The notes beneath the pieces were generated by a model. It was not told the DNA's origin and did no database searches. It saw nothing but the letters and a program-made list of their open reading frames with translations. A DNA stretch of 54,000 nt from Perkinsela sp. CCAP 1560/9 (taxonomy: Eukaryota; Protista; Euglenozoa: Kinetoplastea): positions 1 through 54,000 of the forward strand of contig CBFFSA010000053.1 of the NCBI GenBank assembly GCA_965644495.1, given 5' to 3'. This document shows, in pieces, positions 761-54,000 of this stretch. The first letter of the stretch is position 1; every line of letters starts with the position of its first letter. A program made the translations under genes and the position numbers.

Positions 761-1910
761 CACTGGGAGAATTTGCCCAGTTAAAGGATTTACAATTTTC
801 TCCTGAACATTTAACCTTTCAATCCAACCGCGCGGAACTAACTTGCAGAAAATTTTTCGAAAACAAACAAACTTTTTATTTTATGTATCCTAATCATTCG
901 ATCCCTATGACACTTCAGTACTTAGCCTTCGTCTGCTGTATAAGTCACTTGCCGATGTGAGCACGACAGCAAACGGTTCAATCCACTTTTTCTGAAACTT
1001 GCAACGATACAAAGAAAAATATTGGAACTAAATGCACCTCCTATGTGAAATTCATTTTTGCATAAGCATTAGTATGAAAGGTCACTTTTCATGCTCTGTC
1101 ACGTTTACTTTCTTATTGCCCGTAGTTGATCGCGAACTTGACAATGTCTTCGTTGTCTTATTGATTTCCGTAGTCTTCTGTCGACTTTCGTTGTGTTTTT
1201 CGCCTTTTGTCACTTGGGTATCTTCCTCTCCTGTATCTTTTAATCGCTTCTTTTGCGAATGATTCGAACGCGCTTTTTCTAATATAATTGTATTTGGGCT
1301 GACTGTCCGTGAAGGCTCGGGGATAGAATCTTTATTTTTATGCTTTTTTGTGTTTAATACAGTTGAAGTCATGTTGCGCGGTGAATTCCTAGATCTTTTG
1401 ACTGTATTTTGATCACTAGTTTCCTGATTATCGTTTTCATTGGACTTGCTACGGTTTCCGCGTATTTTAGATTTTGTAGCTGGGGGTTTTACGGTCGTTG
1501 TTTCCATTGTTTGAGATTGTTCTATTTTGAAACCTTGTCGCCTACATTGCGTCTTAGTTAAGCGGGGTCCCTGATTCAGACCTGTCTTTCTTTTACTTTC
1601 CAGCATCAGTACTTCCCCGAAATACTTAACTGAGACTTCACGTTTTGCTAGTTCACATGCCTCTTTCGCCATGGAGTCGGCTGTGTCGTTGTATGGGTTT
1701 TCGTTATGGGATTTTACTTTTACGCAATAGAAATTTCTGTTCGTCTTAATATCAAAATAAGCGTCTCTCAGCAATTCCATGGTTTTACGGTTTTCGAAAG
1801 ATTGATACCCAATGAGCCTATATTTATGAACTATTTCGTGAAAGAATTCCCATAGGTACTCCGAATCTGTGTGTAAGATAACATCTCCCTCATACGCCTT
1901 TACCTCTTCT
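737..1910 (-). mobile_element. 3' fragment of an RNase H-bearing non-LTR retroelement (RTE/Ingi-like)
   Basis: ORF 1082..1996 contains VILHTDSEY...VKVKSHNENPYNDTADSMAKEA (RNase H C-terminal motifs) and a low-complexity tail, followed by a 3' UTR and (TTGG)n. The first ~28 aa of the ORF are read from the neighbouring element's UTR. Confidence 0.7.
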
Positions 1911-2067
1911 AATTTTTCTCTCTCTTTCTCCTCTTTCTCACCTCTTGACATACTTTTCCCACCTTTCTCCCTACTTTCCTGCTTTCCCCTACCCAACTTT
2001 TCAACTTTTCAGGGGGGGTAAGGTCTCCCTCAGCTTCGCCTCACCCGGCCTGCAGGCGGCTCCTCAA

Positions 2068-2300
2068 CCATTCGCGCGTTCCGGACCGGGTCTTTCGACC
2101 TCTCCACGGCCTGACTTGTGAACCCTTCCCTTGTTATATGGGAGGGCGCAGGCGCGGGCCTGTGTCGACAGCGACACGGTCACGAAACAGGATGCTGGCC
2201 GACGGGGAGGAGATTCACTGCCCGTGTACTACCTCACTTGGGGTACCTAGCCCTCGCGGGCTAGGCGTGAGTATAGACTCTGTCGACCCGACCAGCATCC
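2068..2300 (-). ncRNA. Conserved structured 3'-UTR RNA element (copy in A)
   Basis: Near-identical ~233-nt block shared with B, C and E; several hairpins with GNRA loops. Confidence 0.7.
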
Positions 2301-2374
2301 GGGCTCACATTAGAGAACCTCACTCATGAGAGAAAGGCTTGAGAATAGGTGGGTAAGACACAGTGGGTAGGGGC

Positions 2375-5500: not shown

Positions 5501-5965
5501 TTTTTTTTTTTTTGTTTTTATGCAAATAAAGAAAATTTTTCTCTCTCTTTCTCCTCTTTCTCACCTCTTGACATACTTTTCCCACCTTTCTCCCTACTTT
5601 CCTGCTTTCCCCTACCCAACTTTTCAACTTTTCAGGGGGGGTAAGGTCTCCCTCAGCTTCGCCTCACCCGGCCTGCAGGCGGCTCCTCAACCATTCGCGC
5701 GTTCCGGACCGGGTCTTTCGACCTCTCCACGGCCTGACTTGTGGACCTTTCCCTTGTTATACGGGAGGGCGCAGGCGCGGGCCTGTGTCGACAGCGACAC
5801 GGTCGCGAAACAGGATGCTGGCCGACGGGGAGGAGATTCACTACCCGTGTACTACCTCACTTGGGGTACCTAGCCCTGACGGACTAGGCGTGAGTATAGA
5901 CTCTGTCGACGAGACCAGCACCCTCAGCCTTCGAACATGCCGGGATCCGCGAGCCTTGGTTTAGG

Positions 5966-8900
5966 CTACTGCAAAATAAGTGCCGGTTGTGGATCTTCAG
6001 CCGGCATGCGTGAGACAAGCATTCTCGATTGAGAACGCATCAGGGTGAGGTTAAGCTCTTGAAGCAGCTGACGGGTAGCTGCTTCTTGAGATAGAGTCCC
6101 CTGGGAACATGAGGCGCGATGCTTCCCAACCCATCTAAGGATTGATAGGGCACTTGCACTCCAAGCACCATATGATTCTACCACCATGGCAACAAACACA
6201 TGTTTTGCTTGTTCCGCCTCCTCTCTCTCTTTCACCTTGTGAGAAGCGGCGTAGTGCTCCGCAAATGATCCTGCCGCCACCCCGTTAGCGTTGCGGACTA
6301 AGTCCGTGTATTTAGGTTGCTGAACGTGGGTGACAGCAAAATCAAGCACCAGACCTTGAGCTTTCTCATAGCCCGGAATAAAGACATCGCCCGGCCTCGT
6401 GGGACAGCCGCCAGGCCCTAGGTTCCCCAGGCTTACCTCACGTGAAGGTGATAAATTCGCCTTGGAGCACGTGTCGGTGAATTGTGTAATGAGCGCATTG
6501 TGGCGGGAGATCAGTCCATTCCCACTTTTGCAAGACACTGCATGGTTTCCTTCGAGGTCGAGAGGTTGTTGGCATGTGTTAATTGGGCACGTGCTCAACT
6601 CGTTGTAGACCTTGGCACCTAACCACCACCTGGAGAGGGCGCGGAATTCTGTGGGTGTGTAAGCGTGGCCAAGCTCTGTTGATGGGATGCAAAATGCCCA
6701 GCTGCTGGCCCCATCTCCAGTCTGAGAGGTGTACCTCGCGCGAGTGCTACTGTCCGCCGCTGCGTACGCACATGAAAATTCGTGCGCCGAGATTGCGTCG
6801 CTCAAGGCACGTTGACGGGGGGTGCAAGAATTGTCCGTTTCTGTACTTTGACTAGATCCTGTCGGAAAAGGGGAGCTGATCTCCTCTAATGCTCTTCCCG
6901 TGTCCGGATCAACTACGGGGCCTCCGCTCCGGCGATTGATGTCCAGGACTGCGGAAGAGAATCCTTCTGCATCTGACGGTAGCCAACGATCCGTCTCTGC
7001 AGCAAAAGCAACTGAAGACACGTACGCCGCTGAGCGGTGCGCAGATGCAGATCGGAGACCAAAACCTCCATACCGTTTCGGGCGTTGAACTTGTGATCGA
7101 GCTGAGGAGCTAAGCGGGCATATATTCCATTCATACGCATGGAGGACTGCTTCATCAAGACGCTGACAGAGTGCAGAAAGCTCATGTGGTGGGGTAGTTC
7201 GAAGCGAATGGACCATTTGACAAAAACCCGCACACTGTCTGATCAATGACAAGGCAATTTGAGGATCTTCGAGCATTTCTATAGCTTCCAGGGTCTCTTC
7301 TGCCGGTTCCACGGCGTGTGTCGTAAGGAAATCTATGCAATGTTGAGCAGAGCCTATGGGGCTCCCAAGAATGTCAAAATTTCCTTCGCGGTTTATCTTG
7401 GGTTCCGGAATATCGGAAAAAAGAGCAGTTTGGTGTGCCGAGGCAGGGTTCGTTATTATTTCGCATTTAGAGGTATTGATGTGAAGACCCCACTTAGGAC
7501 CAACTCGAGAAAGAGTCTCTAAAGCGAAACTGACGTCTTCGGCCTTACCGGCTATTACCCCGTCGTCGAGGTACCAGAGGTGAAGCTGGAGACTGCCTGG
7601 GAGTGCTTCTTTGATCATTTTCGCGGCTTCGAGCATTACGAGGGAAAAAAGGAGAGGCCCTAGGGGGTCCCCTTGTTGAACCCCCTCGGATGATGGAAGA
7701 GTTCTGGAACCGTAAGTTAGGAGACTATCCGTGGAGTAGGTCCACTCCACCCATGCTGACAATTCTGGAAAATGTTTGCGAAGTAAGGCGATGAACGCAG
7801 ATCTGGATACTCTATTGAACGCGTTCGCTAGGTCCACCTTACATAGCACAAAGTTCGTGTCATCGGCATGGCGGGACATAGTCTGTCGGCAGAGGTGGAT
7901 CACCCTCTCCGATCCGGCTGGCGTGGCAACCCCATACTGTATTCCTTTAAACAAGCGACTAGCTTTTTTCTTGGCTGTTAGACATGCCACTTTACCAACC
8001 AAACGACGGATTGTCTCGCCTGCGGCTATAGGTCGGACGTCACATTCTCCTTTCTGAAGTGCACACAATCTGGCCCCAGCGAAACGTTCCTGAATCTCGA
8101 ATGGAGCTTTTCCAGAAAGAAGCACATTGACTACGTCTGTAAGAGCGGTGAGAGGGTGTACTTTCTCGTCCACGTGGGCACGTAGTGCTATCTGAAGGTG
8201 CTCAGCTCTCAGCGACATCGTTCCGCCAGATGATCCCTTGCGAAAGCTTCCCAAAGCGTGCTTAACTTCTTCTTCGTTTACTTTCAAGGGAGGTGCGTTA
8301 GGGTACGGGAGATCTTGAAGCATGCAGTCCTGCGCACGAGTGGGATGCTTTGCCATCAACTTGCAGTACGTTTCGTCGTTGTCAGGTGCAAAGGGTGCCG
8401 CCGTTAGTGCACTCATTCCACGAGAGACTTCACCCTGGCGTACAAGTTTTTCGCATCGTTCTTTTGCCCTTCTTACTTCTTGCGCAAGCTCCTGGTCTTG
8501 ATCTTGGTCTTTGGTTGATGGGTGCGACGACTTCGTGTTGTTTTTGGTCGCTTCAATCCACAGAGCGGTAAATTCCACTTTTCCCCACCTTTCTAGGCTT
8601 TTTGTCACATGTGAGGCATAAGAAAGACGACCTTTGCGCCCCCCGCGGTTCGGGGCCGGTAGAACGCATTTAGGCAGCATGCCGAGACGGGTCCATGCCG
8701 CTACGGAGTTCTCGCTGGCTACGGAGGATAATACATCGGTGAGCGTTTTCGCCCATTGGTAGCGGCATCGGAATGGAACATCCCTAGAAGTGTTGATAGG
8801 AGTCATGCAAATATCAGAAAGCGATGGTAAAGGAAGAGGTTGGACACTCTGTGAGACATCGGTGCTGCGCGAACCGTGGTCCAATGAACTCTGCGTCAAG

Positions 8901-9907
8901 TTATTCGCGGGATTGGCTACAGAGTCAGTCGAGGTTCCTTTGCAAGCGTTGTCGTGTGTTGCTCGTTTGCCTTCTTCGTAATGTCGCCCGCATTTCTGGC
9001 AGAGAAAGCGCCCTTCGTTCGTCCACCAGGATTCGGGCACTTCATTCGCGTGTCTTGTAGCTACGTGGTTGTAGTAAGCTTGCCACCTGCCGCCATGAGC
9101 GAGTGTTTTCCACACGCACCCTTTAACTGGGCAAGTTTTCAAAGAGTCCTGAGGCGTGCTGCGGAATGCGGCTAAAGACGGAGGAAGTTTGGATTTGCCG
9201 CTTGGTGTTTTGTCTGTCCGGTGACCTGTCGTAGGAAAATAATTCGAGAAGCTTTTCGCTATGTCTCGGCGGCGCTTTTGTTTACCGTTTTGAGTGGGCT
9301 CAGGTGTCACGCTGTCTTCGTGCTCGTCACCCTCGGGGCTTGAAGAGTTGGTACCGTCAGTACACGTCGTTGCCGTTCGTTTTATTCGTTTCTTCTTTCT
9401 CCTACCTTTGCGTTTTGTTGTGATTGTGAAGTCAAGTTCAGTAGGCGTGAGGTCTGGAAACATCATCGCGTTCTCTGTGTCAACGGCACCTTCCATTCTC
9501 CTTGTTCGACGCAGGCATCTCTCCTTCACAGCCCTGTTTGAAGTTTGTAATTGGCTGGGTGAATTTGAGTGCGTTCCCTCGAAATGGAAAGGGGAAGGTT
9601 CATCGTCCCGACGCACACTGCAGTGTATCTCTTCCTCGGTTCTTTCACTTGATAGTTCATTCGCATGCCCCAAATCTGGCGTTGAGTCCTGCGTTGCCGT
9701 CTTCATACTTCGAAGGATTTCGTCCGTTCTCTTTTCCCAGTCCTGAGGAATATCATTAGGGAGGGCTGTGGTGTAGATTAGCTCATCGTACGTGCTAGGT
9801 CCCTTCGCTAAAGATTTGTTTGCCGCAAATTGATCCCAGGACCCAAGTGTGTGAGACGACGCCTCCTCCTCGAAGGTCGGATTTTGCTCTTCAACGGATG
9901 TGGGCAT
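5966..9907 (-). CDS. LsmAD-like + 2 Zn fingers + reverse transcriptase + CCHC/REL endonuclease polyprotein (1313 aa)
   Basis: GSWDQFAAN..STYDELIYTT..TEEEIHCSVRR; CPVKGC..YNHVATRH; CQKC..H...C; RPIAAGE, DLANAFN, QGDPLGP, YLDD; CPINTC..HAVSC, RHN, RPGD, LDFAVTH. Confidence 0.93.
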   Translation of the reverse strand: MPTSVEEQNPTFEEEASSHTLGSWDQFAANKSLAKGPSTYDELIYTTALPNDIPQDWEKRTDEILRSMKTATQDSTPDLGHANELSSERTEEEIHCSVRRDDEPSPFHFEGTHSNSPSQLQTSNRAVKERCLRRTRRMEGAVDTENAMMFPDLTPTELDFTITTKRKGRRKKKRIKRTATTCTDGTNSSSPEGDEHEDSVTPEPTQNGKQKRRRDIAKSFSNYFPTTGHRTDKTPSGKSKLPPSLAAFRSTPQDSLKTCPVKGCVWKTLAHGGRWQAYYNHVATRHANEVPESWWTNEGRFLCQKCGRHYEEGKRATHDNACKGTSTDSVANPANNLTQSSLDHGSRSTDVSQSVQPLPLPSLSDICMTPINTSRDVPFRCRYQWAKTLTDVLSSVASENSVAAWTRLGMLPKCVLPAPNRGGRKGRLSYASHVTKSLERWGKVEFTALWIEATKNNTKSSHPSTKDQDQDQELAQEVRRAKERCEKLVRQGEVSRGMSALTAAPFAPDNDETYCKLMAKHPTRAQDCMLQDLPYPNAPPLKVNEEEVKHALGSFRKGSSGGTMSLRAEHLQIALRAHVDEKVHPLTALTDVVNVLLSGKAPFEIQERFAGARLCALQKGECDVRPIAAGETIRRLVGKVACLTAKKKASRLFKGIQYGVATPAGSERVIHLCRQTMSRHADDTNFVLCKVDLANAFNRVSRSAFIALLRKHFPELSAWVEWTYSTDSLLTYGSRTLPSSEGVQQGDPLGPLLFSLVMLEAAKMIKEALPGSLQLHLWYLDDGVIAGKAEDVSFALETLSRVGPKWGLHINTSKCEIITNPASAHQTALFSDIPEPKINREGNFDILGSPIGSAQHCIDFLTTHAVEPAEETLEAIEMLEDPQIALSLIRQCAGFCQMVHSLRTTPPHELSALCQRLDEAVLHAYEWNICPLSSSARSQVQRPKRYGGFGLRSASAHRSAAYVSSVAFAAETDRWLPSDAEGFSSAVLDINRRSGGPVVDPDTGRALEEISSPFPTGSSQSTETDNSCTPRQRALSDAISAHEFSCAYAAADSSTRARYTSQTGDGASSWAFCIPSTELGHAYTPTEFRALSRWWLGAKVYNELSTCPINTCQQPLDLEGNHAVSCKSGNGLISRHNALITQFTDTCSKANLSPSREVSLGNLGPGGCPTRPGDVFIPGYEKAQGLVLDFAVTHVQQPKYTDLVRNANGVAAGSFAEHYAASHKVKEREEAEQAKHVFVAMVVESYGAWSASALSILRWVGKHRASCSQGTLSQEAATRQLLQELNLTLMRSQSRMLVSRMPAEDPQPALILQ

Positions 9908-9952
9908 GGGATCGCGACCCGGGTAACAAAGAACAAATTAATAAAAATAATT

Positions 9953-10019
9953 CAACAAGGTACAGAAACTGTATCTTTATCGTTAAAGAATTCTTTATCG
10001 TTAAAGAATATCTTTATCG
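9953..10019 (-). other. Spliced-leader (mini-exon)-like sequence preceded by two partial 5' copies
   Basis: Sense: acgataaagatatt-ctttaacgataaagaatt-ctttaacgataaagatacagtttctgtaccttgttg. The ACAGTTTCTGTAC..TTG core matches kinetoplastid/diplonemid SL exons. Confidence 0.8.
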
Positions 10020-10811
10020 TTTTTTTTTTTTTTTTTTTTTTGTTTTTATGCAAATAAAGAAAATTTTTCTCTCTCTTTCTCCTCTTTCTCACCTCTTGAC
10101 ATACTTTTCCCACCTTTCTCCCTACTTTCCTTCTTTCCCCTACCCAACTTTTCAACTTTTCAGGGGGGGTAAGGTCTCCCTCAGCTTCGCCTCACCCGGC
10201 CTGCAGGCGGCTCCTCAACCATTCGCGCGTTCCGGACCGGGTCTTTCGACCTCTCCACGGCCTGACTTGTGGACCTTTCCCTTGTTATACGGGAGGGCGC
10301 AGGCGCGGGCCTGTGTCGACAGCGACACGGTCGCGAAACAGGATGCTGGCCGACGGGGAGGAGATTCACTACCCGTGTACTACCTCACTTGGGGTACCTA
10401 GCCCTGACGGACTAGGCGTGAGTATAGACTCTGTCGACGAGACCAGCACCCTCAGCCTTCGAACATGCCGGGATCCGCGAGCCTTGGTTTAGGCTACTGC
10501 AAAATAAGTGCCGGTTGTGGATCTTCAGCCGGCATGCGTGAGACAAGCATTCTCGATTGAGAACGCATCAGGGTGAGGTTAAGCTCTTGAAGCAGCTGAC
10601 GGGTAGCTGCTTCTTGAGATAGAGTCCCCTGGGAACATGAGGCGCGATGCTTCCCAACCCATCTAAGGATTGATAGGGCACTTGCACTCCAAGCACCATA
10701 TGATTCTACCACCATGGCAACAAACACATGTTTTGCTTGTTCCGCCTCCTCTCTCTCTTTCACCTTGTGAGAAGCGACGTAGTGCTCCGCAAATGATCCT
10801 GCCGCCACCCC
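10020..10811 (-). mobile_element. 5'-truncated lineage B copy
   Basis: Nearly identical to the 3' end of B (C-terminal ~104 aa plus UTR); poly(A) as T-run 10020-10041. Confidence 0.92.
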
Positions 10812-12027: not shown

Positions 12028-15000
12028 CTTTAACGATACAACCATAACTTTACTCTTTAACGATAAAGATACAGTTTCTGTACCTTGTTGAATTATTTTC
12101 TTTTTTCCTTTCCCCTTTTTGGTTCAACTAGTATGTCCTGCCGCGAACGTCCATGTACACACTCCTCAGAAAATGAAGCGTTCTTAGCAAGAATGGTGAA
12201 CACAGACGACGTTACATTGAACGAGGCGGAGAAATCACACCTTCTTGGTAGTTGGAATCAATTTGAGGGCAACAGACATCTCATCTCAGCTCCCAGTACC
12301 TATGACGAAAGTCTGTACACAACGGAAATCCCGAGGAATATCCCTGCAGAATGGCTACGCCTCGCTGAAAAAAAATCAGACGACCGCGAAACACCGGACA
12401 CGGGACACCACCTAGCCGAGAATGAGGAAATACAACACTGCGCAGTACAACGAAAGGGTACGACAGCCAACCTTGCAGCTAGTATTTCTACTCTGAAATC
12501 AGGGCCAGCAATCAACGCTGCACTGAAGGATGCAATATCACGTCAACAGCGCAATGCGGATGGGATCAAAGGAGTTTCAAAGACGGATAACCGATCACCT
12601 AGGCGACCCTTGGAAACACGAAGGCAACACCAACAGACTATTAAGGACAGCACCCTCGGCGAACAAACGCCGACACGCTCTCAGCCAGCCCACCAGATCC
12701 AATCACCTCCAAAGCATTCCTCCGGCACAAAACCCATGACTAGCGAAACTGGTTGTTCCGAAGCACAATCGGACGGTAGGCGCGAAGACTTTGGCAACAG
12801 ATATGCCCCACGAAACGGAAGCGACAAGCCCCCGCCACTTCCGCAGAGCGCTCCCAAACACCGCATCTGTCCTGCTGAAGGATGCGCCTGGCGCACGATT
12901 GCACATGGAGGGTCTTGGCAAGCATATTATAACCACGTAGCGTACCACCACAGTACCGGCGTCCCGGCTGCATGGTGGGCAGCGGAAGGCAAGTTCCTTT
13001 GTGAAACGTGCGGCAAACACTACACGCTCAACCGTAAAACTACGCACCCGAAGACCTGCATCGGTCAATCAAGTCAAGCAGCACAAATGTCAGTAGATAT
13101 TTTTTCGCAGCACTCCATCGTAACAGAAACCGCCGAATTACCTACTTTGGCAAGTGTCTGCACACTCGCGAAGAGCACATGTAAAGACGTGCCCCACCGA
13201 TGCCGTCAGCTGTGGGCGGAGATCTTAACTAGCGCTTTGAAGGCAGCAGTACAAGAAAACTCAGTAGCGACATGGACACTCCTTGCCATGCTCCCAAAGT
13301 GTGTGTTACCGGCCCCTCGACGCGGAGGGCGTAAAGGCTACATGGCGTACTCATCCCACGTTCGAAAGTGCATGGAGCGATGGATGGCAAAGGAATACAC
13401 TCAGTTGTGGAAAGAGGCAGCCGCTAATAGACGACAACGAAACCCTGACCCCATTTCGGAACAACATGAGGCCCAGAAAGCCGTCATCCGCGCAGAACTT
13501 CTAGTCAGACAAGGTGAATTCTCTAGAGGTATGGCTGCCTTAACCGCAGCGCCAATGGCAGATGAAAACGAAGAAACATATGCAAAGCTGTTGGAGAAGC
13601 ATCCGGCACGTCAAACTACTACGGAAGCCCTCGCCGACCCTCCACCACATGTCAAACATTTGAACCTCGAAGAATCCGATATTAAAGTAGCCATAAACAG
13701 TTTTCGTCGAGGATCTTCAGCAGGTACGATGGGTCTCCGCCCGGAACACTTACAATCCGCGCTTCTTTCCTACGAAGACAAGAATGTTCACCCGCTTCAG
13801 GAACTCACAAACCTAGCTAATCATCTTCTTTCTGGCAAAGCACCCATCGAAGTACAAGCATATTTCGCAGGTGCGCGACTATGTGCGCTCAAGAAGGGGG
13901 AAAACGACGTTCGCCCTATCGCAGCGGGGGAGACTATTCGTCGGTTAGTGAGCAAGGCCGCATGCAGTAGTGTCCGAATGAAAGCGGGGAAATACTTTGA
14001 AGCACAACAATATGGAGTGGCCACCCGAGCAGGGGCAGAACGTATCATTCACCTTTGTAGGCTTGCAATGGACACTGACACAACAAATTCCGATATAGTT
14101 TTATGCAAAGTTGATTTGTCCAACGCATTTAACAACGTTAGCCGTGACGCATTCATCAGTCTCACCAGAGAGCACTTCCCGGAATTGTCCAGATGGGTAG
14201 AATGGTGCTACGTCGAAACCAGTAGCTTAACTTACGGGCACCGTTTCGTACCGTCCGCGGAAGGGGTACAACAGGGCGATCCCCTCGGTCCTCTTCTCTT
14301 TTCCTTAGTCATGTTGGAGGTTACCAAACAAATTCAGTCGTACACGGAACTTCTTCTAAACCTGTGGTACTTAGACGATGGAGTTTTTATAGGGAAAGCG
14401 GAAGAAGTAAGAAAAGCCCTCGACATACTTGATCACCTCGGACCAGGTCAGGGACTACACCTCAATAGCAAGAAATGCGAGATCATCACACTACCCTCAT
14501 CTGCACACCAAACATCTCTTTTCCCAGATATACCAAAAGACAAGCAAAACACAGAAGGAAATTTCGACATCCTAGGAAGCCCTATCGGATCCCACAAACA
14601 CTGCGCCGAATACCTCATGACCAATGCGATCGAACCAGCAGAAGAAACTTTAGTTGCTTCCAGTTTAATTGAGGACCCGCAGGTCGCCATGGCACTGATA
14701 CGACAATGTGCTGGCTTTTGTCAACTGGTCTACGCCCTACGTACAACACCCCCACAATGCATACAACGCGTTTGCGAACATCTAGACAATTCACTGTTGA
14801 GCACAGCAGAGGAAATACTTTGCCCACTGAACGCCCCTGCCCGCGCTCAGATCCAACGCCTGAAGAGACACGGAGGTTTCGGTCTGCGTTCATCGGAAAT
14901 GTACTCGTCTTCAGCTTACATAGCATCTGTGGTGTTCGCAGCAAGCAAGGACGGATGGAATCCACTGGACGCGGAAGGTTTTTCACCTGCCGTCAACGAC

Positions 15001-16551
15001 GTGAACGCAAAAGCCGGAGGCACTCTCGTAGATCCCGAAACGGGTCGTTTCCTTTGCCCCACCACCCAACAGCGCGACCGATCACATCCCTCTTTTCCAC
15101 CAAAGCCACCCATTCACTCTTCCACACAGGTCGATACAGCCCGCGAGCCATCAGACACCGGACCTTTTTTAGATGCTGACCCGCCGTTGGGCGCTGACCT
15201 TGACATAGATATTGACCCGCCAGAATGGGACGAAAGTATCATCCCACGTCATAAAGATATCATCCGCGCTATAGGGGAAAGGGAGTTTAATATAGCATAC
15301 TGTTCCGCTGATACACGAACGCGAACCAGATGGGTATCACAATCAGGGAAAGGGGCTAGCAGCTGGGCATTCGTCACCCCATCGAAGGACCTGGGCTATG
15401 CATTCAAACCCGCGGAGTTTCGAACCTTGTGTCGATGGTGGTTGGGGGTGGATGTATACGGAGAAACTCGTCCATGTCCCTCGGATGAATGCAAACTCCC
15501 TCTGGGTCCTGAAGGGGATCACGCACTCGTGTGCAAACATGGACAAGGTATAATAAACCGGCACAATTCCCTGGTTGAACATTTTTCCTCCTTCTGCGGG
15601 CATGCCTCTTTGGCACCCCAACGAGAGCACAGTCTTGGCAATCGAGGTCCCGGAGGGGGGCTCACCAGACCAGGCGATGTGTTTCTCCCCACGTATTCCA
15701 AGGCTAAAGGCATGGTCCTTGATTTTGCAGTTACCCACGCTCAGCAAACTAAATACACGGACAAAGTTCGTAACGCTAGCTGGGTAGCTGCAGGATCATT
15801 CGCCGAGCACTACGCCGCGGAAAAAAAGGTGCACCAACGGTTGGAGGCTGAGGAAGCAGGCCATGAATTCACAGCCATGGTGGTAGAGAGCTATGGCTCC
15901 TGGAGCGTGAGCGCAACGTCCGTTCTAAAGGGAGTCGGAAAGAGGCGGGCACAGGCCTCAAATGGGACCCTTAAGGAAGAGCAGGCTACAAATAAATTGT
16001 ATGCCGAATTGAATGTGACCCTCATGCGAGCACAAGCTCGTATGATGGTTACACGCATGGCTGTGCCCGACCCGAACGAGCCCATCACGGAAGGATAGTG
16101 TCGGACCCAACGGATCCTATGGTGGTGACATAGGCCACGGGTGCTGGTCGGGTCGACAGAGTCTATGCTCACGCCTAGCCCGCGAGGGCTAGGTACCCCA
16201 AGTGAGGTAGTACACGGGTAGTGAATCTCCTCCCCGTCGGCCAGCATCCTGTTTCGCGACCGTGTCGCTGTCGACACAGGCCCGCGCCTGCGCCCTCCCA
16301 TATAGCAAGGGAAGGGTTCACAAGTCAGGCCGTGGAGTGGTCGAAAGACCCGGTCCGGAACGCGCGAATGGATTGGGTCTGTATTGCTTGTTTTAGTTTT
16401 TACTGTTTCTTGTTTGTAGTATATACTTAGGGGAGATTAAATTGCCAGTTTTGGGCTGAGAAAAAACAAAAGGTACATCTGTGGAAACAAAAAGATTTGC
16501 TAATTTGATTGCTTGTTTTCAACTCGTAAAAAAAAAAAAAAAAAAAAAAAA
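12026..16551 (+). mobile_element. Full-length CRE/SLACS-type retrotransposon, lineage C
   Basis: SL-like head 12026-12090, intact ORF, shared 3' RNA 16139-16371, poly(A) 16528-16551. Confidence 0.93.
12133..16098 (+). CDS. LsmAD-like + Zn fingers + RT + REL polyprotein (lineage C)
   Basis: First ATG at 12133 (the track's TTG start lies inside the SL). GSWNQFEGN..STYDESLYTT..EEIQHCAVQR; CPAEGC..H..H; YLDD; RHN, RPGD, LDFAVTH. Confidence 0.93.
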   Translation: MSCRERPCTHSSENEAFLARMVNTDDVTLNEAEKSHLLGSWNQFEGNRHLISAPSTYDESLYTTEIPRNIPAEWLRLAEKKSDDRETPDTGHHLAENEEIQHCAVQRKGTTANLAASISTLKSGPAINAALKDAISRQQRNADGIKGVSKTDNRSPRRPLETRRQHQQTIKDSTLGEQTPTRSQPAHQIQSPPKHSSGTKPMTSETGCSEAQSDGRREDFGNRYAPRNGSDKPPPLPQSAPKHRICPAEGCAWRTIAHGGSWQAYYNHVAYHHSTGVPAAWWAAEGKFLCETCGKHYTLNRKTTHPKTCIGQSSQAAQMSVDIFSQHSIVTETAELPTLASVCTLAKSTCKDVPHRCRQLWAEILTSALKAAVQENSVATWTLLAMLPKCVLPAPRRGGRKGYMAYSSHVRKCMERWMAKEYTQLWKEAAANRRQRNPDPISEQHEAQKAVIRAELLVRQGEFSRGMAALTAAPMADENEETYAKLLEKHPARQTTTEALADPPPHVKHLNLEESDIKVAINSFRRGSSAGTMGLRPEHLQSALLSYEDKNVHPLQELTNLANHLLSGKAPIEVQAYFAGARLCALKKGENDVRPIAAGETIRRLVSKAACSSVRMKAGKYFEAQQYGVATRAGAERIIHLCRLAMDTDTTNSDIVLCKVDLSNAFNNVSRDAFISLTREHFPELSRWVEWCYVETSSLTYGHRFVPSAEGVQQGDPLGPLLFSLVMLEVTKQIQSYTELLLNLWYLDDGVFIGKAEEVRKALDILDHLGPGQGLHLNSKKCEIITLPSSAHQTSLFPDIPKDKQNTEGNFDILGSPIGSHKHCAEYLMTNAIEPAEETLVASSLIEDPQVAMALIRQCAGFCQLVYALRTTPPQCIQRVCEHLDNSLLSTAEEILCPLNAPARAQIQRLKRHGGFGLRSSEMYSSSAYIASVVFAASKDGWNPLDAEGFSPAVNDVNAKAGGTLVDPETGRFLCPTTQQRDRSHPSFPPKPPIHSSTQVDTAREPSDTGPFLDADPPLGADLDIDIDPPEWDESIIPRHKDIIRAIGEREFNIAYCSADTRTRTRWVSQSGKGASSWAFVTPSKDLGYAFKPAEFRTLCRWWLGVDVYGETRPCPSDECKLPLGPEGDHALVCKHGQGIINRHNSLVEHFSSFCGHASLAPQREHSLGNRGPGGGLTRPGDVFLPTYSKAKGMVLDFAVTHAQQTKYTDKVRNASWVAAGSFAEHYAAEKKVHQRLEAEEAGHEFTAMVVESYGSWSVSATSVLKGVGKRRAQASNGTLKEEQATNKLYAELNVTLMRAQARMMVTRMAVPDPNEPITEG

Positions 16552-17223: not shown

Positions 17224-20200
17224 TTTCTGTACCTTGTTGATTTAATTTTCTATTTTTCTACGCTTATGACACGCCTTTCTCGTACGTCTCGTTTAGATTC
17301 CGAAAACACGCGGAAAAAGGGCAGCAGAACAACAGTGAACAACGGGAAGTCTCACGGGAGAGTTGAAAAACAACGTACTCAACGAGATCAAAGCAAGACG
17401 AACGGAATAAAGGTAGCAGAAGAATCAGGATCGCACACGGAGACACCAGTGAAGGTGAAGAAGACTCCAAAGATCAAGATAATAGGTTCCAAAACACTAG
17501 CCCCGAATTGGGCGGACCATGAGCCTCCGTGTGAAATCACATCGCGGAATCTAATCAAAATCAAAGCCAAGAACTTCCGCATCGGATCTACGAGTCAATC
17601 ACACGAGAACATAGCCCATGACGAAAACCATATCCAAGAGGACCCAGCCAAAGAAATGTCCGAAACAGAAAGCGAGACCAGTGATACAATGTGTCTGGAC
17701 GACGATGGATCGACGCAAGATCGAGTACAGGAGCTAATGACACAGGCCGGCAACAAATCGCCCGACCAAGTGTACAACATCGTTTCCAAGTGGGGCAAGG
17801 GTACAGAATGTGTGATCGAATGGGGCTTCCGACAGAACACTACAAACTACAAGTCAAACGGCATCGTTGTAGGCAGGACCGTGCGAAAATCAACCGTGAA
17901 AGTCAAGATTTCATACGAGCCGGCTCTAGGTCACGATGGTCCATGCGGTTTTCTTTATCTTCCACCGTCCAATAAAATCAGAATCTGTAACCTCCAAGCC
18001 ACTAAGTTATTCAAAATCGAGATGCCGACACAAAATTTGGAGGAACAAGCGGAGCACATCTCATGCGAAGACGGTCAGAGTGACCTTGATCCGCTCCCGC
18101 CTATGGCTCAAATAGACCCATCTTTCGCGGTTCATGTTGTGGCGATTTTCCGTGCGATAATTCGGGGATATGCAGCGGCGGAGCTTGACTCAGAAAAAGA
18201 GGCGATATGGCACAAATTTTTGAATGCGCCTCGCGATTCACTTGCGACAGTACGTCAAGCAATTCGACGAAACCAAAAAGTAGCTCATGTTCGCAACGAC
18301 CGAGAAAACTTGGAAGCTAGCAACTTGAGTGCGGAACAACGGGCGGAGTTAGAAATTGACAGGCGTTCGATCAGGCACGCCCTACAGACGGCGCGGGCAG
18401 GAAACCTTGGCAAAGCAACTCGGATCCTGGACAATGTCTACAAGGAATCAGCTCTCACTCCTGAAGAAAAAGTGCGAAAGCTTCAACAACTTCATCCTGA
18501 AGGCGACGCCATACGAATCTTTGGAGTGTGTTGTGTTTTTTCACTTCAAAAGAAGTGTTTTTTCATAAAGAATATTTTCTTGTAGTATATACAAGGGGTT
18601 AAAAAAGATAAGCTGGCTGCTCGCGCTCGATCTGGTCAAATCTTCGGATTTGACTTGCGTGCTGCGTGGCACAGCTCCTAGCAAGCGATAAGGGGGGGCT
18701 TGTCCTAGGGAGGTAACATCTCCTCGGAGATATTTTGCCTAAAAATCAATCAATCAATCAATACGAATCCCGGAAGCAGACTTCCCACGGACTGGCGTTG
18801 TTGAGAAATCAGAGGTTCGCCTAGCGACCGAAAAATTATCCAGAGGCGCTTCACCAGGACCAACCGGCCTGAGTGAAAGCATGATGCGACTGCTCGTAGA
18901 CGACGAAGAGTCATGTCTTTCACTTTGCCACATGCTTCGGGATGTCATCAACGGCGAAGTTCCTCTGAATGTGCGAAAACGTCTAACCCGATGCAGAATC
19001 ATCGCGCTAGCGAAACCTCAAAATGGAATTCGACCTATTGCGATGGGGGATACCATTCTGAAGATTTGCGGTTCCATCCTTCTACAACGACATGAAAACG
19101 CTCTGCAAAATTTTTTCTCCCCAATTCAACGAGGCATTTTGCAAAAAAACGCATGTGAGTCCATCGTTCACGAACTTTTAAATGAATACGAAGAAGGACA
19201 TGCTATCCTCACCGTCGATTTTAGCAACGCGTATAATACACCACAACGCAACGCCATTGCTGAGGCACTCCTTGGTAATCCCATTTTCAAGCCTTTCATG
19301 CGCCTATTCTACCTAGAATATGGGATTCCCTCTGAGCTGCTATTTTTTGCGCACAATGCTCTGTTTGCTACCATCGAAAGCTCTTCAGGAATTCGCCAAG
19401 GATCGGCACTTTCATCAATGTACTTCTGCGCACTTTTGCAAGGCCCGCTACGAGAACTCATGCACCTCTATCCTGACGTGAAGATCCGAGCATACCAAGA
19501 CGATGTGACTTTGAGCTCCAAAAACGTGCAAGCATTGGAGGCAGCTTTCTTTTACCTGCGTGAGATCGCCGCAGAGATGAACCTCCGAATTAATTTCCAG
19601 AAATGCGATTGGTTTCAGAAGAACATTCCCAACATAGCTCAGCCTCCTCCGTTGGAAAAACTTGGAGTAAACTTTTGCAGTGATGCGATAAAAGTCTTAG
19701 GCGCATACGTAGGTACAGACCAAGTCGTGGAAAATCTGCTGATCAAGAAAATGGAGAAACACAAGTGCCTATTCCGCAGGTTGTTGCTTATGGGTCCCAG
19801 TAATTTGTCTCTTGCCATTCTCCGCCGTTGTACGATTCCACGGCACGATTACCATCTACGAGTACATCGGCCAGGCGCTACTTTCCAACTAGCACAATCC
19901 TTCGAGAACCAAGTAAACAAAGTTCTAGAAAAGTGGAGTGGAGCAGACGCAAACGCCCTGAAACTCGCCGCTCTACCACAGAAACTCGGTGGCCTAGGCT
20001 TAATTTCCTCGACTCTGAAGCAAAAACATTTCTTCGAAACTGCCAGCAAATCTATTGATGAGCACCTTAAACCCAATAACGCTCCGGTAGATCAGAAAGG
20101 CAGCGAAAAAGCTATGAAACAACCGCAAAGTCGAGGAGAGGCAGCGCGCAAGCTATTGAAAAAGAAGCTAAGTGCAGAACACGATAAACAGATAACTGAG

Positions 20201-42635: not shown

Positions 42636-45600
42636 TTTAACGATAAAGATACAGTTTCACGAGATAAAGATACAGTTTAACGATAAAGATACAGTTTCTG
42701 TACCTTGTTGAATTATTTTCTTTTTCTTTGTCTACTCTCTTTTTGATGGTGATGAACGAGACACACCCAGACAACCATCCTGAGGACACACCTTTCGACC
42801 CTGGAATCATGGATTCTAATCAGAATTCTGTCCACGAAGAAAAATCCCATGAATTGGGTAGTTGGGACCAGTTTAAGGGCAACGAACATCTTATCCGAAG
42901 CGCAAGCACCTATGACGAGAGTTTGTACACTACTGCCATCCCGCAGAATATCCCGCACGATTGGATGCGCCGTGCGCACGCTTTAGAAAAGGATATTGAA
43001 ACGCCCGACATGGGTCACGTACATGACCGAACTGAAGAGGAGATCCATTGTAGTGTCCAGCGTGATATCGATAAGTCTAATAATGCTGATTTCGAAGGAG
43101 CTGATTCGATTCCACACAGCCAACTAAGCACATTTAGCAAGGCTGCGAAGATGACCGATGAGTGCTCTAATGTCAATCCTGACGGAACCGATTCGACTTC
43201 ACTCAGCCAATTAAGCACATCTAGCAAGGCTGTGAAGACCACTGATGAGGGTCCTAATGTCAACTTCGAGGGAACTGATGCGACTTCACCCAGCCAATTG
43301 AGAAAATCTAATAAAGCTGTGAAGGCGAGATTTTTACGACACCTTCGAAACTCAGAACACTCTAAGAACTGTTACGAATCCGAAAGCAGTACGGCCACGT
43401 TCCCAGACCTCACTCCGACGGACCTCGTTTCTCATTTCTCCGTTTCTAGCAGTCTAAAGAGGCGCAAGAACAAGAAGTGCTCTAAAAGAAATATTACCTC
43501 ACAGACATCTTTGAACCAATCAGGCTCCGAAAGCACAGTAGCGACAGAGTCGGGTAGCGACGGAGTCTCCGTTGAACCGGTATCATCACAAGACAGCTGC
43601 GTCACATCGGAAGTAAAGCTTAAGCGGAACCGAGCCACTTTCAAATCCGAGCCTGTTAAATCACCTAACCTCACGCGGAAGACAAAAACATCATATAACG
43701 CTAGAAAGTGCCCAGTTGAATCATGTTTATGGCAAACCGGTCCTCATGGAAATCAATGGCAGGCGTATTATAATCACGTCTCAAACAGGCACGGGGCGGA
43801 AGTAACGGACACGTGGTGGGCAGAGGAAGGAAGATTTCGATGTGCATACTGCAAAAAACATTACCACTTAGGCAAAAAGGAGTCCCATACGCGACATTGC
43901 AAATTTCGCACACACTCATCCGATAACCCTCAGGATCCTTCCCGTGAGGTGAACGACTCCCCGAACCCTACCACAAACGCCGCTGTGATGCCTGAACGCC
44001 CCCCCGGTACGAACCCTAATGATCAGCCCGATCAGATGGAGGATGTTGACAACTTGCTGCCGACCTTATCTTCTGTGTGCACACTGCCGGTGATTACGAG
44101 CAAGGATATCCCTTATTGCTGCAGGGCTGAATGGGCACGAGTACTCACTTCCTGCTTGATGGCAGCCACGCTAGATAATACACTCGAGGCGTGGACTCTC
44201 CTTGCGATGCTTCCGAAATGTGTCCTTCCGGCCCCCCGCCGTGGAGGCAGTAAGAACAAAACCTCTTATGCGTCCTACGTTCGAAAATGTCTTTCCAGAT
44301 GGAACCAAAAGGAGTACATACCCCTCTGGAGTGAAGCAATCGCCAGTCTACAGCGCAAACGCAAATCCCCGGCGCAAGCAACCAGCGTAGAAGAAAATGA
44401 CGACAAGGCAGCTCTACGAGCGGCTAGGCTTGCCCGAGATGGAGAGCTATCGCGTGCCATGACAGCGATGACCTCGGAGCCACTCGCTCCCCATGACGAT
44501 GCCACCTACAATAAACTCATAAACAAGCACCCTCCACGACTCTCTGGCGAAGACCCAGGCGAACAACTTCCTTCATCGTCCGTAACCCCTCTCAAGATCA
44601 CACAGGAAAATGTAACCGAGGCACTCTCAAGTTTCCACAGAGGATCCTCCGGAGGGGCGTTCGGCCTTCGGCCAGAACATGTGCAGATAGCCATGGCATA
44701 TCACAACGATGAGCGCATAGATCCATTGGGAACGCTCACCAAGTTCGTTAACCATCTTCTTTCCGGAGGCGCGATGGACGAGGTCCAGCCGCACTTCGCT
44801 GGCGGACGCTTATGTGCACTTCATAAGGGAGCACACGATGTTCGGCCCATCGCCGCAGGAGAAACCCTCCGGCGTCTCGCAAGCAAGGTTGCGTGCTTTT
44901 CTGTCAAACCAAAGGCCTGTCGGCTCTTCCGAGGACATCAGTACGGGGTTGCAATACCCGCTGGAGCCGAGAGGGTAATACATTTATGCAGATTGACCAT
45001 GGCGGAACACGTTGATGACGAGGACTTCGTCTTATGTAAAGTTGATCTCCGAAATGCGTTCAACCACGTATCACGCAACAGCTTTATTTCGCTCACCCGT
45101 CAATATTTTCCTGAGCTTAGTCCCTATGTCGAATGGTGTTACTCTTCAGACAGCCGCCTAACCTTCGGAGATCGAACGATCACCTCTTCTGAAGGAGTTC
45201 AGCAGGGAGACCCACTAGGCCCTCTTTTATTTTCTCTCGTCGCGAAGGAACTATTTACGGAAATCAAGAAGGCAGCCCCAAGGCTTGACTTAAACATGTG
45301 GTTCTTGGACGATGGGGTTCTGTCAGGCAAATCTTCAGACGTCAGGCATGCACTTGACGTCATTGCAGTCGAAGGTCCCAAGTGGGGCTTACATCTCAAT
45401 GTTGCTAAATGTGAACTCATTACGAATCCAGCTGCCTCTGACCGATTTGCTCTTTTCCCGGACATTCCTGGTTTGAACAAAAACACAGACGGCAATCTTG
45501 ACATCTTGGGAAGCCCTATTGGATCTACAAGCTTTTGTCACCGATACCTATTGGAAAATCCAATCAGTCTCGCTGAGGACTCACTAACGGCAATACAAAA

Positions 45601-50373: not shown

Positions 50374-50419
50374 AATTATTTTCTTTATTTCATCTTTTCC
50401 AGGTACGCGGTTCTTTCTC

Positions 50420-53400
50420 ATGTCTGAAGACGATCTTCTCAAAGCCTCACCTCCGCCGATGGACGACGATTCATTTTTACAAGAGGAAGCAGTACACAAT
50501 AGAGGATCCTGGGACCAGTTTGCTGGAAACACACATCTCATTAAGCAACGGAGTACGTACAACGAATTGCTCTACACGACCCCTATTCCTGCGAACATTC
50601 CGGAAGAATGGAACATGAACGCCGCCTTGATCTCAACTGAGAACCAGACACGTGATACGGGACAGGTAGATAGTAGCGATGAGGAAACAAACCACTCACG
50701 AGTCATCAGATTACATCATGGACACCAAAAAACGCAATCTGATAGCAACACTATCACTAAAAAGTTTACTCGATGCCAACCATCTTCCACACCCCCAAGC
50801 GTCAAAGGGAATCGGGGAATCGTAAAGTCTCATCGAAAAGCGCGCGAACCAGCTACACCTCGAAAAGGGGAAGCGACGGAACATAACCCCGAAAACAACT
50901 CTCCACGCCAAATAGTACAAGGAACTTCCCTTGAAATCCCACCTTCGACGAGCGAAGCAGTTCTCACGTTTCCATCTTCCCAAAACCGTCCGACACAAAG
51001 GGAGTGCCCCGCAGAAAACTGTATTTGGAAAACTCGTGCCCATGGAGGTCAATGGCAGTCGTACTACAACCACGTTGCTTACCGACACGGAAATAACATA
51101 CCCAATGACTGGTGGACAAAGGAAGGACGATTTCTCTGCGACGCATGCGGTCGTCATTACGATATTAGCAAGAAAACTTCTCATTTGAATCATTGTAAAA
51201 TGCAATCTACACCACCCTCCTCGCAGCCGCCCTCACAACCACAGCAGCCTTCACAGCTGTCAGAGTCCGGGGAAGCCATGTACGATATACAAGGTACGCA
51301 TAGTCTACCGTCCCTAGAGGAAGTTTGCACGACTCAAATAAGCACGTGCAAGGATGTCCCACACCGATGTCGATATCTGTGGACCAGAATTTTTACCGCA
51401 GCCCTCTCCACCGCGGTAAACGAAAACTCACTGAGAGCCTGGACCCTTCTTGCCTTGCTTCCGAAATGCGTCCTACCAGCCCCGTACCGAGGAGGCCGCA
51501 AAGCTCACAAGTCCTATACCTCCTACATCTCAAAGCGAATGGAACTTTGGATACAAGGCCAATATACCACCCTATGGGCCCAAGCAAATTCGGAGCATGA
51601 CAGGAAGCGCTCAAAAGTGCCGAATAATGAGATTGAGGGTGAAGAAGACAAGGCTGCAATACGGGCTGAAATTCTGGTTCGCCAAGGAGAATTTTCCCGA
51701 GGCATGGCTGCCCTTACTGCAGCTCCACTTGCACCATACAGCGAGGAAACCCTGCTAAAGCTGCAGGAAAAACACCCTAGCCCCCATGGTAATCCCATCT
51801 CGTGCCCCCTGCCTCCCCTGGAAGAAGAAGCTTTAAAACTGGACGAATCCGAGGTGAGAAAAGCAGTAGATACCTTCCGTCGCGGATCCTCTGCTGGGAC
51901 TATGGGGCTCCGGCCTGAACACCTCCAAACAGCGCTTCAAGAGCATGTCGACCAGAATATGAATCCTCTTACGACGCTCACTTCCTTCGTAAACCATCTC
52001 CTAGCTGGCAAAGCCCCAGACGAAGTGCAACCTTTTTTTGCAGGGGCACGGCTATGCGCACTCGAAAAAGGGGAAGATGACGTGCGGCCTATCGCTGCGG
52101 GGGAAACCCTTAGACGCCTGGTGAGCAAGGCAGTGTGCCTTTCGATAAAAGAAAAAGCAGGATCCTTCTTTGGACGTCGTCAATACGGGGTCGCAGCGTC
52201 TGCTGGGGCGGAAAGAGTGATACACCTTTGTCGCCGTCTAATGAGAAATAATGAAGAAAATGAGAACATAACGTTCTGTAAGGTGGATCTTCGGAACGCC
52301 TTTAATAACGTGAGCCGACCCGTCTTCATCTTCCTCACACGAAAGCATTTCCCTGAACTATCCCCATGGGTAGAATGGTGTTATGCCAATCACAGCTGTC
52401 TCACATTCGGCAATGATTTTATCCCCTCGGCAGAAGGAGTGCAACAAGGAGACCCTCTGGGCCCACTCCTCTTCTCCTTGGTGTTAGCAGAGGTAACAGA
52501 AGAAATTGCATCAAATTCTAACCTACGAACACAATTATGGTATTTAGATGACGGTGTGCTTGTAGGTGGGCCCAAAGAAGTCCGTAAAGCCCTAGACGTC
52601 CTCGACGAGATAGGACCGAAGTGGGGACTCTTCCTGAATCTCTCCAAGTGCGAGATCATTACCCCCCCAGCATCAGCTCATACCTCCGTTTTCTTTCCTG
52701 ACATCCCCAGTGATAAAATACGGTACGACGGGAACTTCGACATTCTTGGAAGCCCAATAGGCTCTGCGGAACACTGTGCGGAGTTTCTCATGACACACGC
52801 GATTGAACCAGCCCGCGAAACATTAGAAGCTACTGCTGTGTTAGAAGATCCCCAAATAGCTCTCGCACTAATACGGCAATGTTCGGGGTTTTGTCAGATG
52901 GTGTACGCACTGCGCACCACTCCTCCCCAAGCCCTTGGAGAATTATGCCAAAAACTTGACTCTCATCTAGTCCAGGCCGTGGAGCACGCAATTTCTCCCT
53001 TAGGCGTCGCCGCTCGCGACCAAATACAACGACCAAAACGCCACGGCGGGTTCGGACTTCGCTCATCAATTCTCCACCAGTCAGCAGCCTACGTTTCTTC
53101 CGTCGCGCACGCCGCTAGCTTGGACAACTGGGACCCCACAGAAGCTGAGGGATTTTCCAGCTCAGCACATGACATAAATGACAAAGTTGGGACTGATCTG
53201 GTTGATCCATACACTGGACGCATTACCAAACCTAGTGTGCCTGGTGAATATCATGCAAATCGGAGCATCCTTTCCCGCCCAGCGAAAAGAAAACTCGCAC
53301 AATCCCTCAATCACGCCCTTCTCCCGGTCTCGACGGATCAGGAAAAGATCATCCCGAGGCAAAAACATCTCAGCCAAGCTATCTCGGATAGGGAATTTCA

Positions 53401-54000
53401 AACGGCATATTCAAAGGCAGACGCAAGAACGCGGGCGCGATGGATCTCGCAGTCCGGAAAAGGGGCCGGAAACTGGGCTTTCGCAACTCCCTCCAAGACC
53501 AGAGGCTACGCTTTCACCCACACGGAGTTTCGTACCCTAACACGCTGGTGGCTAGGCATGGACGTCTTCCCCGAAGATCGGCCTTGCCCAGCTGACGGGT
53601 GCACCCTTCCCTTGCTCAAGAATGGAGAGCACGCTTTGCTCTGCAAGAACGGCCATGGTATCATCTCACGGCACAACGCTCTGGCCCAACAATTTACATC
53701 GTTCTGCAGCAGAGCCTTCCTGGCGCCACAGAGAGAGAAGAGTTTGGGAAATCGGGGTCCTGGGGGGGCTCTCACGAGACCAGCAGACGTATTTCTGCCA
53801 ACTGCCTCCATCGCCAAAGGATCTTTAGCGCAAGGCATGGTCCTAGATTTTGCGGTCACTCACGCACAGCAAACAAAGTATTTGGACTCAGTCCACAATG
53901 CTAGCTGGGTGACCCCGGGGTCTTTTGCCGAGCACTTCGCGGAGACCAAGGCGCGACAGCGACAAGAAGCAGAAAAAGCAGGACACCTCTTCACAGCGAT
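50420..54000 (+). CDS. LsmAD-like + Zn fingers + RT + REL polyprotein, lineage F (runs off window)
   Basis: Not in the ORF track, presumably because there is no stop in the window. ATG at 50420: MSEDDLL..RGSWDQFAGNTHLIKQRSTYNELLYTT; YLDD; RHN, RPAD, LDFAVTH. The frame is the same at both ends; closely related to A. Confidence 0.9.
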   Translation, partial: MSEDDLLKASPPPMDDDSFLQEEAVHNRGSWDQFAGNTHLIKQRSTYNELLYTTPIPANIPEEWNMNAALISTENQTRDTGQVDSSDEETNHSRVIRLHHGHQKTQSDSNTITKKFTRCQPSSTPPSVKGNRGIVKSHRKAREPATPRKGEATEHNPENNSPRQIVQGTSLEIPPSTSEAVLTFPSSQNRPTQRECPAENCIWKTRAHGGQWQSYYNHVAYRHGNNIPNDWWTKEGRFLCDACGRHYDISKKTSHLNHCKMQSTPPSSQPPSQPQQPSQLSESGEAMYDIQGTHSLPSLEEVCTTQISTCKDVPHRCRYLWTRIFTAALSTAVNENSLRAWTLLALLPKCVLPAPYRGGRKAHKSYTSYISKRMELWIQGQYTTLWAQANSEHDRKRSKVPNNEIEGEEDKAAIRAEILVRQGEFSRGMAALTAAPLAPYSEETLLKLQEKHPSPHGNPISCPLPPLEEEALKLDESEVRKAVDTFRRGSSAGTMGLRPEHLQTALQEHVDQNMNPLTTLTSFVNHLLAGKAPDEVQPFFAGARLCALEKGEDDVRPIAAGETLRRLVSKAVCLSIKEKAGSFFGRRQYGVAASAGAERVIHLCRRLMRNNEENENITFCKVDLRNAFNNVSRPVFIFLTRKHFPELSPWVEWCYANHSCLTFGNDFIPSAEGVQQGDPLGPLLFSLVLAEVTEEIASNSNLRTQLWYLDDGVLVGGPKEVRKALDVLDEIGPKWGLFLNLSKCEIITPPASAHTSVFFPDIPSDKIRYDGNFDILGSPIGSAEHCAEFLMTHAIEPARETLEATAVLEDPQIALALIRQCSGFCQMVYALRTTPPQALGELCQKLDSHLVQAVEHAISPLGVAARDQIQRPKRHGGFGLRSSILHQSAAYVSSVAHAASLDNWDPTEAEGFSSSAHDINDKVGTDLVDPYTGRITKPSVPGEYHANRSILSRPAKRKLAQSLNHALLPVSTDQEKIIPRQKHLSQAISDREFQTAYSKADARTRARWISQSGKGAGNWAFATPSKTRGYAFTHTEFRTLTRWWLGMDVFPEDRPCPADGCTLPLLKNGEHALLCKNGHGIISRHNALAQQFTSFCSRAFLAPQREKSLGNRGPGGALTRPADVFLPTASIAKGSLAQGMVLDFAVTHAQQTKYLDSVHNASWVTPGSFAEHFAETKARQRQEAEKAGHLFTA

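Follow-up and report, generated by a model that had tools for sequence, protein, structure and literature searches.

Accessory modules known from non-long terminal repeat (non-LTR) retrotransposons include RRM, esterase, or PHD domains in ORF1 proteins, RNase H, and cysteine proteases. Elements of the CRE type (SLACS, CZAR, CRE1/2) as well as NeSL and R2 consist of a single open reading frame (ORF) with a C2H2-like finger, a reverse transcriptase (RT), a CCHC motif, and a C-terminal restriction-like endonuclease (RLE) region, and a 2025 curation that covers the transposable elements of 57 trypanosomatids gives RT, RLE, zinc fingers, and internal repeats as the sole components of CRE elements, without ever mentioning Lsm or ataxin (PMC12278014). 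Here, we focused on four elements (B, C, E, and F) in a 54,000-nucleotide stretch of the Perkinsela sp. CCAP 1560/9 genome (contig CBFFSA010000053.1, positions 1 to 54,000; referred to here as the window), which carry an LsmAD domain, as in Ataxin-2 and its counterpart PBP1, at the N terminus of the RT protein. In their anatomy, these elements share with the published RLE elements the ORF layout as read from the translations, the poly(A) end, and the association with the spliced leader (SL) in a euglenozoan; they differ in that an LsmAD heads the protein and that SL sequence lies at the head of the copies, which do not appear to be inserted in SL RNA genes. As in the accessory-domain captures of other non-LTR retrotransposons, the retrotransposition machinery has gained a host-type module by fusion, but in this case the module comes from the PABP-PBP1 messenger ribonucleoprotein (mRNP), and no biochemical activity of its own has been assigned to it.

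Three of the elements, B, C, and E, encode one complete large protein each, with the LsmAD at its N terminus, and the ORF of F runs past the end of the window. The features of the four elements are as follows.

9943..9989, minus strand: SL-derived head of element B, an SL-like string with a ACAGTTTCTGTACC core
5966..9907, minus strand: ORF of element B, 1,313 amino acids, with LsmAD, C2H2-like finger, RT, and CCHC plus RLE region
9608..9853, minus strand: LsmAD of B (amino acids 19-100), including the HxxGSWDQF lead-in common to host PBP1
7388..8041, minus strand: RT domain of B (amino acids 623-840), Pfam RVT_1, E value 1.1e-16
12085..16098, plus strand: ORF of element C, 1,337 amino acids as listed, first ATG at 12133, SL head at ~12056-12091
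12238..12453, plus strand: LsmAD of C, Pfam 22.3 bits
42728..46990, plus strand: ORF of element E, 1,420 amino acids, SL head at ~42676-42711
42848..43063, plus strand: LsmAD of E, above the Pfam curated cut-off
50420..54000, plus strand: ORF of element F, 1,193 codons without a stop, continuing past the window end, SL head at ~50339-50374
50495..50710, plus strand: LsmAD of F, Pfam 21.9 bits

The SL-like string with its conserved core is found at the head of all four elements. In a probable RNA run that bears the same species label, the contigs match this string only and then diverge, which is the behavior expected of a real spliced leader. The RVT_1 domain scores 61.7 bits in the B protein and 52-81 bits in every full-length element copy tested with Pfam, and putative CCHC and C-terminal PD-(D/E)XK-type endonuclease motifs, located in a region conserved in relatives, can be read in the translations. 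The copies in the window sit in chains of retrocopies, outside any SL gene array. We also considered F as a decayed fragment and rejected this option: its ORF is free of stops up to the window end and is 60% identical in a single frame to the lineage L032/L033 (1,196-1,199 amino acids), so that F is a nearly complete copy.

The first-pass annotation of this DNA had reported a common N-terminal motif in the four otherwise divergent proteins, and translation recovers the LsmAD-type block at all four sites, with the correction that copy B (9608-9844) has to be read on the minus strand, since many stops interrupt the plus strand there. The shared block of ~85 amino acids (HxxGSWDQFxxN...STYDExLYTT...TPDTGH...EExxH[CS]xV) begins 20-55 residues past the start of the long ORFs and contains 27 invariant columns in the four-way alignment, with divergent flanks. 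Pairwise identity is 57-62% within the block versus 13-38% in the linker that follows it, and 14 columns are invariant over 17 element lineages. The TPDTGH motif, conserved among the elements, occupies the place of an ERG-type motif in PBP1.

In order to place this block, we compared it with the Pfam LsmAD model (PF06741; curated cut-off, 25 bits), which is the best or sole N-terminal match in B, C, E, and F. Element E exceeds the cut-off (27.4 bits for the whole protein and 30.9 bits for the N terminus alone), as do other copies (up to 34.4 bits in the genome search, 35.8 bits for L017, and 30.8 bits for the public copy P0005). Scored alone, B (18.2 bits), C, and F are among several copies that stay below it, as might be expected if the block were unrelated to LsmAD and resembled it by chance, but they are tied to the family by an hhalign comparison of the 17-sequence element profile with host PBP1 (99.4% probability, E value 1.4e-21). 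A profile built only from the 17 element N termini retrieved 1,340 proteins at an E value of ≤1e-3 among 1.84 billion representative proteins, where PF06741 was found, again at an E value of ≤1e-3, in 98 of 100 aligned segments and where the matches beyond the element's own copies fall at the position of the LsmAD in Ataxin-2 proteins. An alignment of 100 sequences including canonical LsmADs shows no variation at Q26, F27, N30, and Y45 and a conservation of at least 90% at W24, E42, T46, T47, E91, E92, S96, and V98, and all of these residues are present in the elements. The element domains thus have the length and the core of the LsmAD of Ataxin-2/Pbp1/PBP1 (W-D-Q-F, N, S-T-Y/F, E, L-Y-T-T, an acidic run, and S-x-V-x-R). 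In structure prediction of the domain alone, which the first-pass annotation had proposed as a check, the three ESM Atlas models with the closest folds belong to LsmAD clusters, but with low template-modeling (TM) scores of 0.34-0.44, and the AlphaFold2 model of the B domain reaches a pLDDT of 78 and a pTM of 0.37. Searches by sequence and by fold returned no solved structure of LsmAD. Given that BLASTP, hhalign, the element-only profile, the nearest folds, and the domain tree (see below) all favor homology, chance resemblance is refuted and its probability is practically nil. The N-terminal block is therefore a genuine LsmAD, in frame with a zinc-finger/RT/RLE protein, as the annotation had proposed.

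To gain an idea about the origin of the domain, we compared the elements with the PBP1/Ataxin-2 orthologue of the same genome (21 Mb in 110 contigs), a single 962-amino-acid ORF in which SM-ATX scores 31 bits and LsmAD 48.6 bits and which also has a PAM2 string (amino acid 436). This is the only gene genome-wide that combines these three features, and it is the strongest LsmAD match of the genome. The matches number at least 105 and lie, with few exceptions, in open frames of 1,190-1,480 amino acids or fragments of these. The host PBP1 LsmAD is 42% identical to that of E over 102 amino acids (BLASTP E value 6e-17) and 35% identical to that of B over 99 amino acids (E value 2e-13), and the similarity already includes the EKSHxxGSWDQF lead-in, where it starts ~15 residues ahead of the Pfam boundary. 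The element LsmAD, unlike that of Ataxin-2/PBP1, is solitary, standing at the N terminus of an RT protein without LSm/SM-ATX, PAM2, or long disordered regions and with TPDTGH in place of the ERG-type motif. A Pfam scan of the element proteins and a genome search found no SM-ATX domain in the elements; genome-wide, this domain is confined to PBP1, one 355-amino-acid ORF, and two small ORFs below threshold. The SM-ATX-like match of the 355-amino-acid ORF (G000:C5:224356-224571, plus strand; 33.6 bits) possibly marks an LSM12 orthologue and is a candidate partner. Within this genome, the MLLE domain occurs in two PABP-like genes only.

In a tree of 61 LsmAD domains, where PBP1 is represented by the host protein and by unnamed representative sequences, with no named kinetoplastid or diplonemid PBP1 among them, the element domains are monophyletic (ultrafast bootstrap/SH-aLRT support, 99/96) and form one split together with host PBP1 and a metagenomic PBP1-like protein, P0142 (99/91). 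We also considered as donor a diplonemid family of PDZ-LsmAD(x2-3)-RRM proteins (for example, Diplonema papillatum KAJ9472136.1), which is the top non-element match to the element profile (116.6 bits), shares with the elements a PDG-type motif ahead of the acidic run, and, like them, carries LsmAD outside Ataxin-2 without an LSm domain. These are, however, cellular multidomain proteins that are not mobile, and they form a clade of their own (100/95); forcing them together with the elements is 15.5 log-likelihood units worse (approximately unbiased [AU] test, p-AU 0.033), so that tree and test favor PBP1. No orthologue of the diplonemid family was found in this genome. The simplest reading of these comparisons is that the domain was captured once from the PBP1 gene of the host lineage, without its LSm domain or PAM2, and, given that amino acid identity is just ~40%, this would be an old event. 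BLASTP, hhalign, the tree, and the AU test agree in grouping the elements with the LsmAD of host-lineage PBP1, which upholds the annotation's description of a captured host module.

The searches also showed that LsmAD occurs outside Ataxin-2 more often than its name implies. The diplonemid cellular proteins P0136 (KAJ9472136.1), P0143 (Lacrimia lanifica), P0140, P0146, and P0153 combine a PDZ-like domain with one to three LsmADs (and an RRM in two of them) in the absence of LSm, and the fungal protein P0151 contains three LsmADs and a kinase domain.

We also considered that the LsmAD segment might be a relic of a chimeric retrocopy, without function today. Nonsynonymous divergence (dN) is 0.10-0.22 in the LsmAD, 0.09-0.24 in the RT, and 0.28-0.53 in the linker after the LsmAD, so that the domain is on par with the RT and two to four times below the adjoining linker. 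The ratio to synonymous divergence (dN/dS) is ~0.09-0.11 where dS is finite, a rough figure because dS is saturated between most lineages. The comparison across lineages that the annotation had called for thus shows that the LsmAD is under purifying selection and conserved at the protein level. The genome does hold many chimeric, truncated retrocopies, and one lineage in the window, element D, manages without the domain, as a neutral passenger would allow; given constraint that matches that of the RT across lineages with saturated synonymous sites, 14 columns invariant in 17 lineages, and retention of the domain in at least 40 long open frames, we regard such a passenger as very improbable.

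In element D, intact and near-identical RT/RLE ORFs without LsmAD are arranged in tandem, which provides a natural LsmAD-less comparator.

22833-42483, plus strand: element D, four ORFs of 1,179 amino acids at ~5.37-kb spacing
17266-21001, plus strand: partial copy of element D

D has a relative at another genomic site, L035 (G000:C1:3163500-3168350), which shares 55% identity with D from residue 189 on but has a different, LsmAD-bearing head. Its LsmAD nests inside the element clade and is 47% identical to that of B, whereas the RTs of B and L035 share 25%. These comparisons indicate that the LsmAD head moved between element clades as a 5' module, consistent with the template-switching chimeras that fill the window. 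A single capture, with subsequent spread during which the 5' module was also passed on to another element clade that is deeply diverged, would fit this pattern, and the transfer of the head between clades is a second sign of its usefulness.

Two arrays with a period of ~2.28 kb were also observed (G000:C62:28500-46000 and G000:C30:2268-11639, the latter being locus L043). Their unit joins a 5' fragment, headed by SL sequence and closing with an A-run just past the LsmAD, to 3' fragments of other elements, and both arrays look like amplified chimeric retrocopies. The array on contig 62 was considered as a family of solo-LsmAD genes, which we rejected, since it is a mosaic of truncated retrocopies.

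Among the relatives of these elements, two sister copies from a Joint Genome Institute metagenome, P0017 (locus L040:529-5661) and P0019, are 40-43% identical to them over finger, RT, and endonuclease and end in a C-terminal MLLE domain (46.8-49.3 bits); the two are 72% identical to each other over this extension. Two related groups of elements thus contain modules of both partners in one complex. Further relatives contain a ubiquitin, USP, Ulp1, or RNase H domain. The N-terminal LsmAD fragments that could be traced (P0005, P0145, and P0198) and a related RT protein (P0002) all come from one ENA assembly, ERZ24900291, which also contains a protein identical to E across the RT-RLE region searched. 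An Atlas feature search with the RT-RLE part returned only unnamed RVT_1 clusters, and there were no named CRE sequences among the matches of the element searches, where the named relatives were from a sponge and a dinoflagellate, not from trypanosomatids. On a first look, the 21-Mb genome contains 1,072 RVT_1 candidates and is unusually rich in diverse retroelements; 150 scored candidates belong to other RT families, with 95-135 bits versus 52-81 bits for the LsmAD elements.

We found no published case of an architecture that joins LsmAD to RT, including in paper searches that combined LsmAD, Ataxin-2, or MLLE with retrotransposons (Repbase being outside their scope). A 2026 survey of Ataxin-2 chimeras makes no mention of reverse transcriptase or transposons (PMC12898128), and the Diplonema genome paper merely counts SLACS-like RT models. 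The annotation's statement that no CRE/SLACS/CZAR element with an LsmAD is known is thus in line with the absence of the architecture from both this survey and the trypanosomatid curation.

To our knowledge, LsmAD has no known partner. In Ataxin-2, PAM2 is necessary and sufficient for binding to PABP, whose MLLE domain binds PAM2 peptides such as that of PBP1, and the LSm domain is both required and sufficient for binding to LSM12 (PMC11166328). In trypanosomes, tethering of PBP1, LSM12, MKT1, or PABP to an mRNA leads to higher expression (bioRxiv 10.1101/2020.03.02.973057). The annotation had proposed that the captured domain stabilizes element RNA or targets the RNP to poly(A)-mRNA granules. 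As stated, that function borrows the properties of whole Ataxin-2/PBP1, while the elements carry LsmAD alone, without LSm, PAM2, or HNPY, so that this transfer of whole-protein functions goes too far. Indirectly, the MLLE-bearing sister elements point to a role in the PABP-PBP1 axis. The best explanation, to which we would give a probability of about one half, is that the PBP1-derived LsmAD serves these SL-headed, poly(A)-tailed RLE non-LTR elements as a docking module for the PABP-PBP1 mRNP. Element RNAs would be mRNA-like, beginning with the spliced leader and ending in poly(A), and would encode a single polyprotein whose first ~100 residues are the LsmAD. If the isolated LsmAD acts as a protein-docking module, the new element protein could plug through it into the PABP-PBP1 mRNP of the SL-capped, polyadenylated RNA from which it was translated, and this docking may favor stability or translation of the element RNA or may set the protein at the 3' end, the start of reverse transcription. 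A wider version, in which LsmAD is an autonomous docking module and two sister lineages of one retrotransposon group each took over, independently, a different side of the PABP-PBP1 pair (one by an LsmAD copy, the other by an MLLE copy), each tying the protein to its own poly(A) RNA, is an idea that we consider less likely than not.

Several observations weigh against docking. Besides the lack of a known partner, deletion of LSm-AD from fly or human Ataxin-2 leaves target choice and granule association unchanged (PMC11166328). Pattern scans found PAM2 in none of the 17 element proteins, only in host PBP1, and no MKT1-binding HNPY motif in the element proteins. Element D is intact without LsmAD, which makes the domain dispensable for some lineages, and the saturation of dS described above blurs the measure of selection. 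The one probable RNA run yielded no RNA evidence for expression of the LsmAD-bearing ORFs, the match being to the SL only. Finally, the AlphaFold2 model is not compact, with a long helix, predicted confidently, that short helices surround, which agrees with the reported weak folding of isolated LSmAD (PMC11898529). A complex prediction for the host PBP1 LSm domain (amino acids 135-235) with the B LsmAD scored 0.00 in a run without controls and speaks neither for nor against binding.

Given that the LSm/LSmAD region of Ataxin-2 binds DDX6 according to a report cited in PMC12898128, the element domain could instead be a decoy that competes with host PBP1 for a partner such as a DDX6/DHH1-type helicase and, rather than recruiting helpful factors, keeps element RNA safe from repression or sequestration in granules that depends on PBP1. 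One host gene is confronted with at least 105 copies, and an invariant core in which TPDTGH stands for the ERG-type motif would fit a diverged binding surface; however, a separate small protein would serve equally although LsmAD is always fused to the RT protein, and the MLLE-bearing sister elements suit recruitment as well as competition. We therefore consider a decoy rather unlikely. The fixed place of LsmAD upstream of the zinc-finger region in every lineage could alternatively mean that it helps the element's own N-terminal region to fold or to bind RNA, as for LSm in Ataxin-2, with no host partner involved. Such an internal role is hard to reconcile with a linker between LsmAD and zinc finger that is long (~40-170 amino acids), fast evolving, and variable in length, or with the presence of LsmAD at the head of two clades whose downstream sequences are only ~20% identical, and it seems distinctly unlikely to us.

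Two further features of the window were noted. A 3' RNA module of ~235-330 nucleotides is 91-97% identical between lineages whose proteins share only 45-60%.

5688..5923, minus strand: 3' untranslated RNA module of B, ~95% identity to other lineages (blastn, query 16099-16480 against the window)
10216-10451 and 2065-2304, minus strand: further copies of the 3' RNA module
16139-16375, 47018-47348, 49071-49306, and 49648-49978, plus strand: copies of the 3' RNA module
1082-1996, minus strand: ORF of 304 amino acids with an RNase H-like C-terminal motif, then a lysine/serine-rich tail (identified by eye)

Ataxin-2 is a disease gene (spinocerebellar ataxia type 2 and risk of amyotrophic lateral sclerosis), and LsmAD is its most conserved and least understood domain. 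That this domain was cut out, fused to a selfish element, and held at RT-level constraint in many lineages argues for a stand-alone activity, and the element LsmAD is a natural test of what isolated LsmAD does. If the docking explanation is true, it would be a minimal, selection-tested probe for the missing LsmAD function in Ataxin-2. For retrotransposons, the elements represent a new class of captured accessory module, with the poly(A)-mRNP machinery as its source, and the LsmAD- and MLLE-bearing elements together suggest that the PABP-PBP1 complex is needed by mRNA-like retrotransposons in trans-splicing protists.

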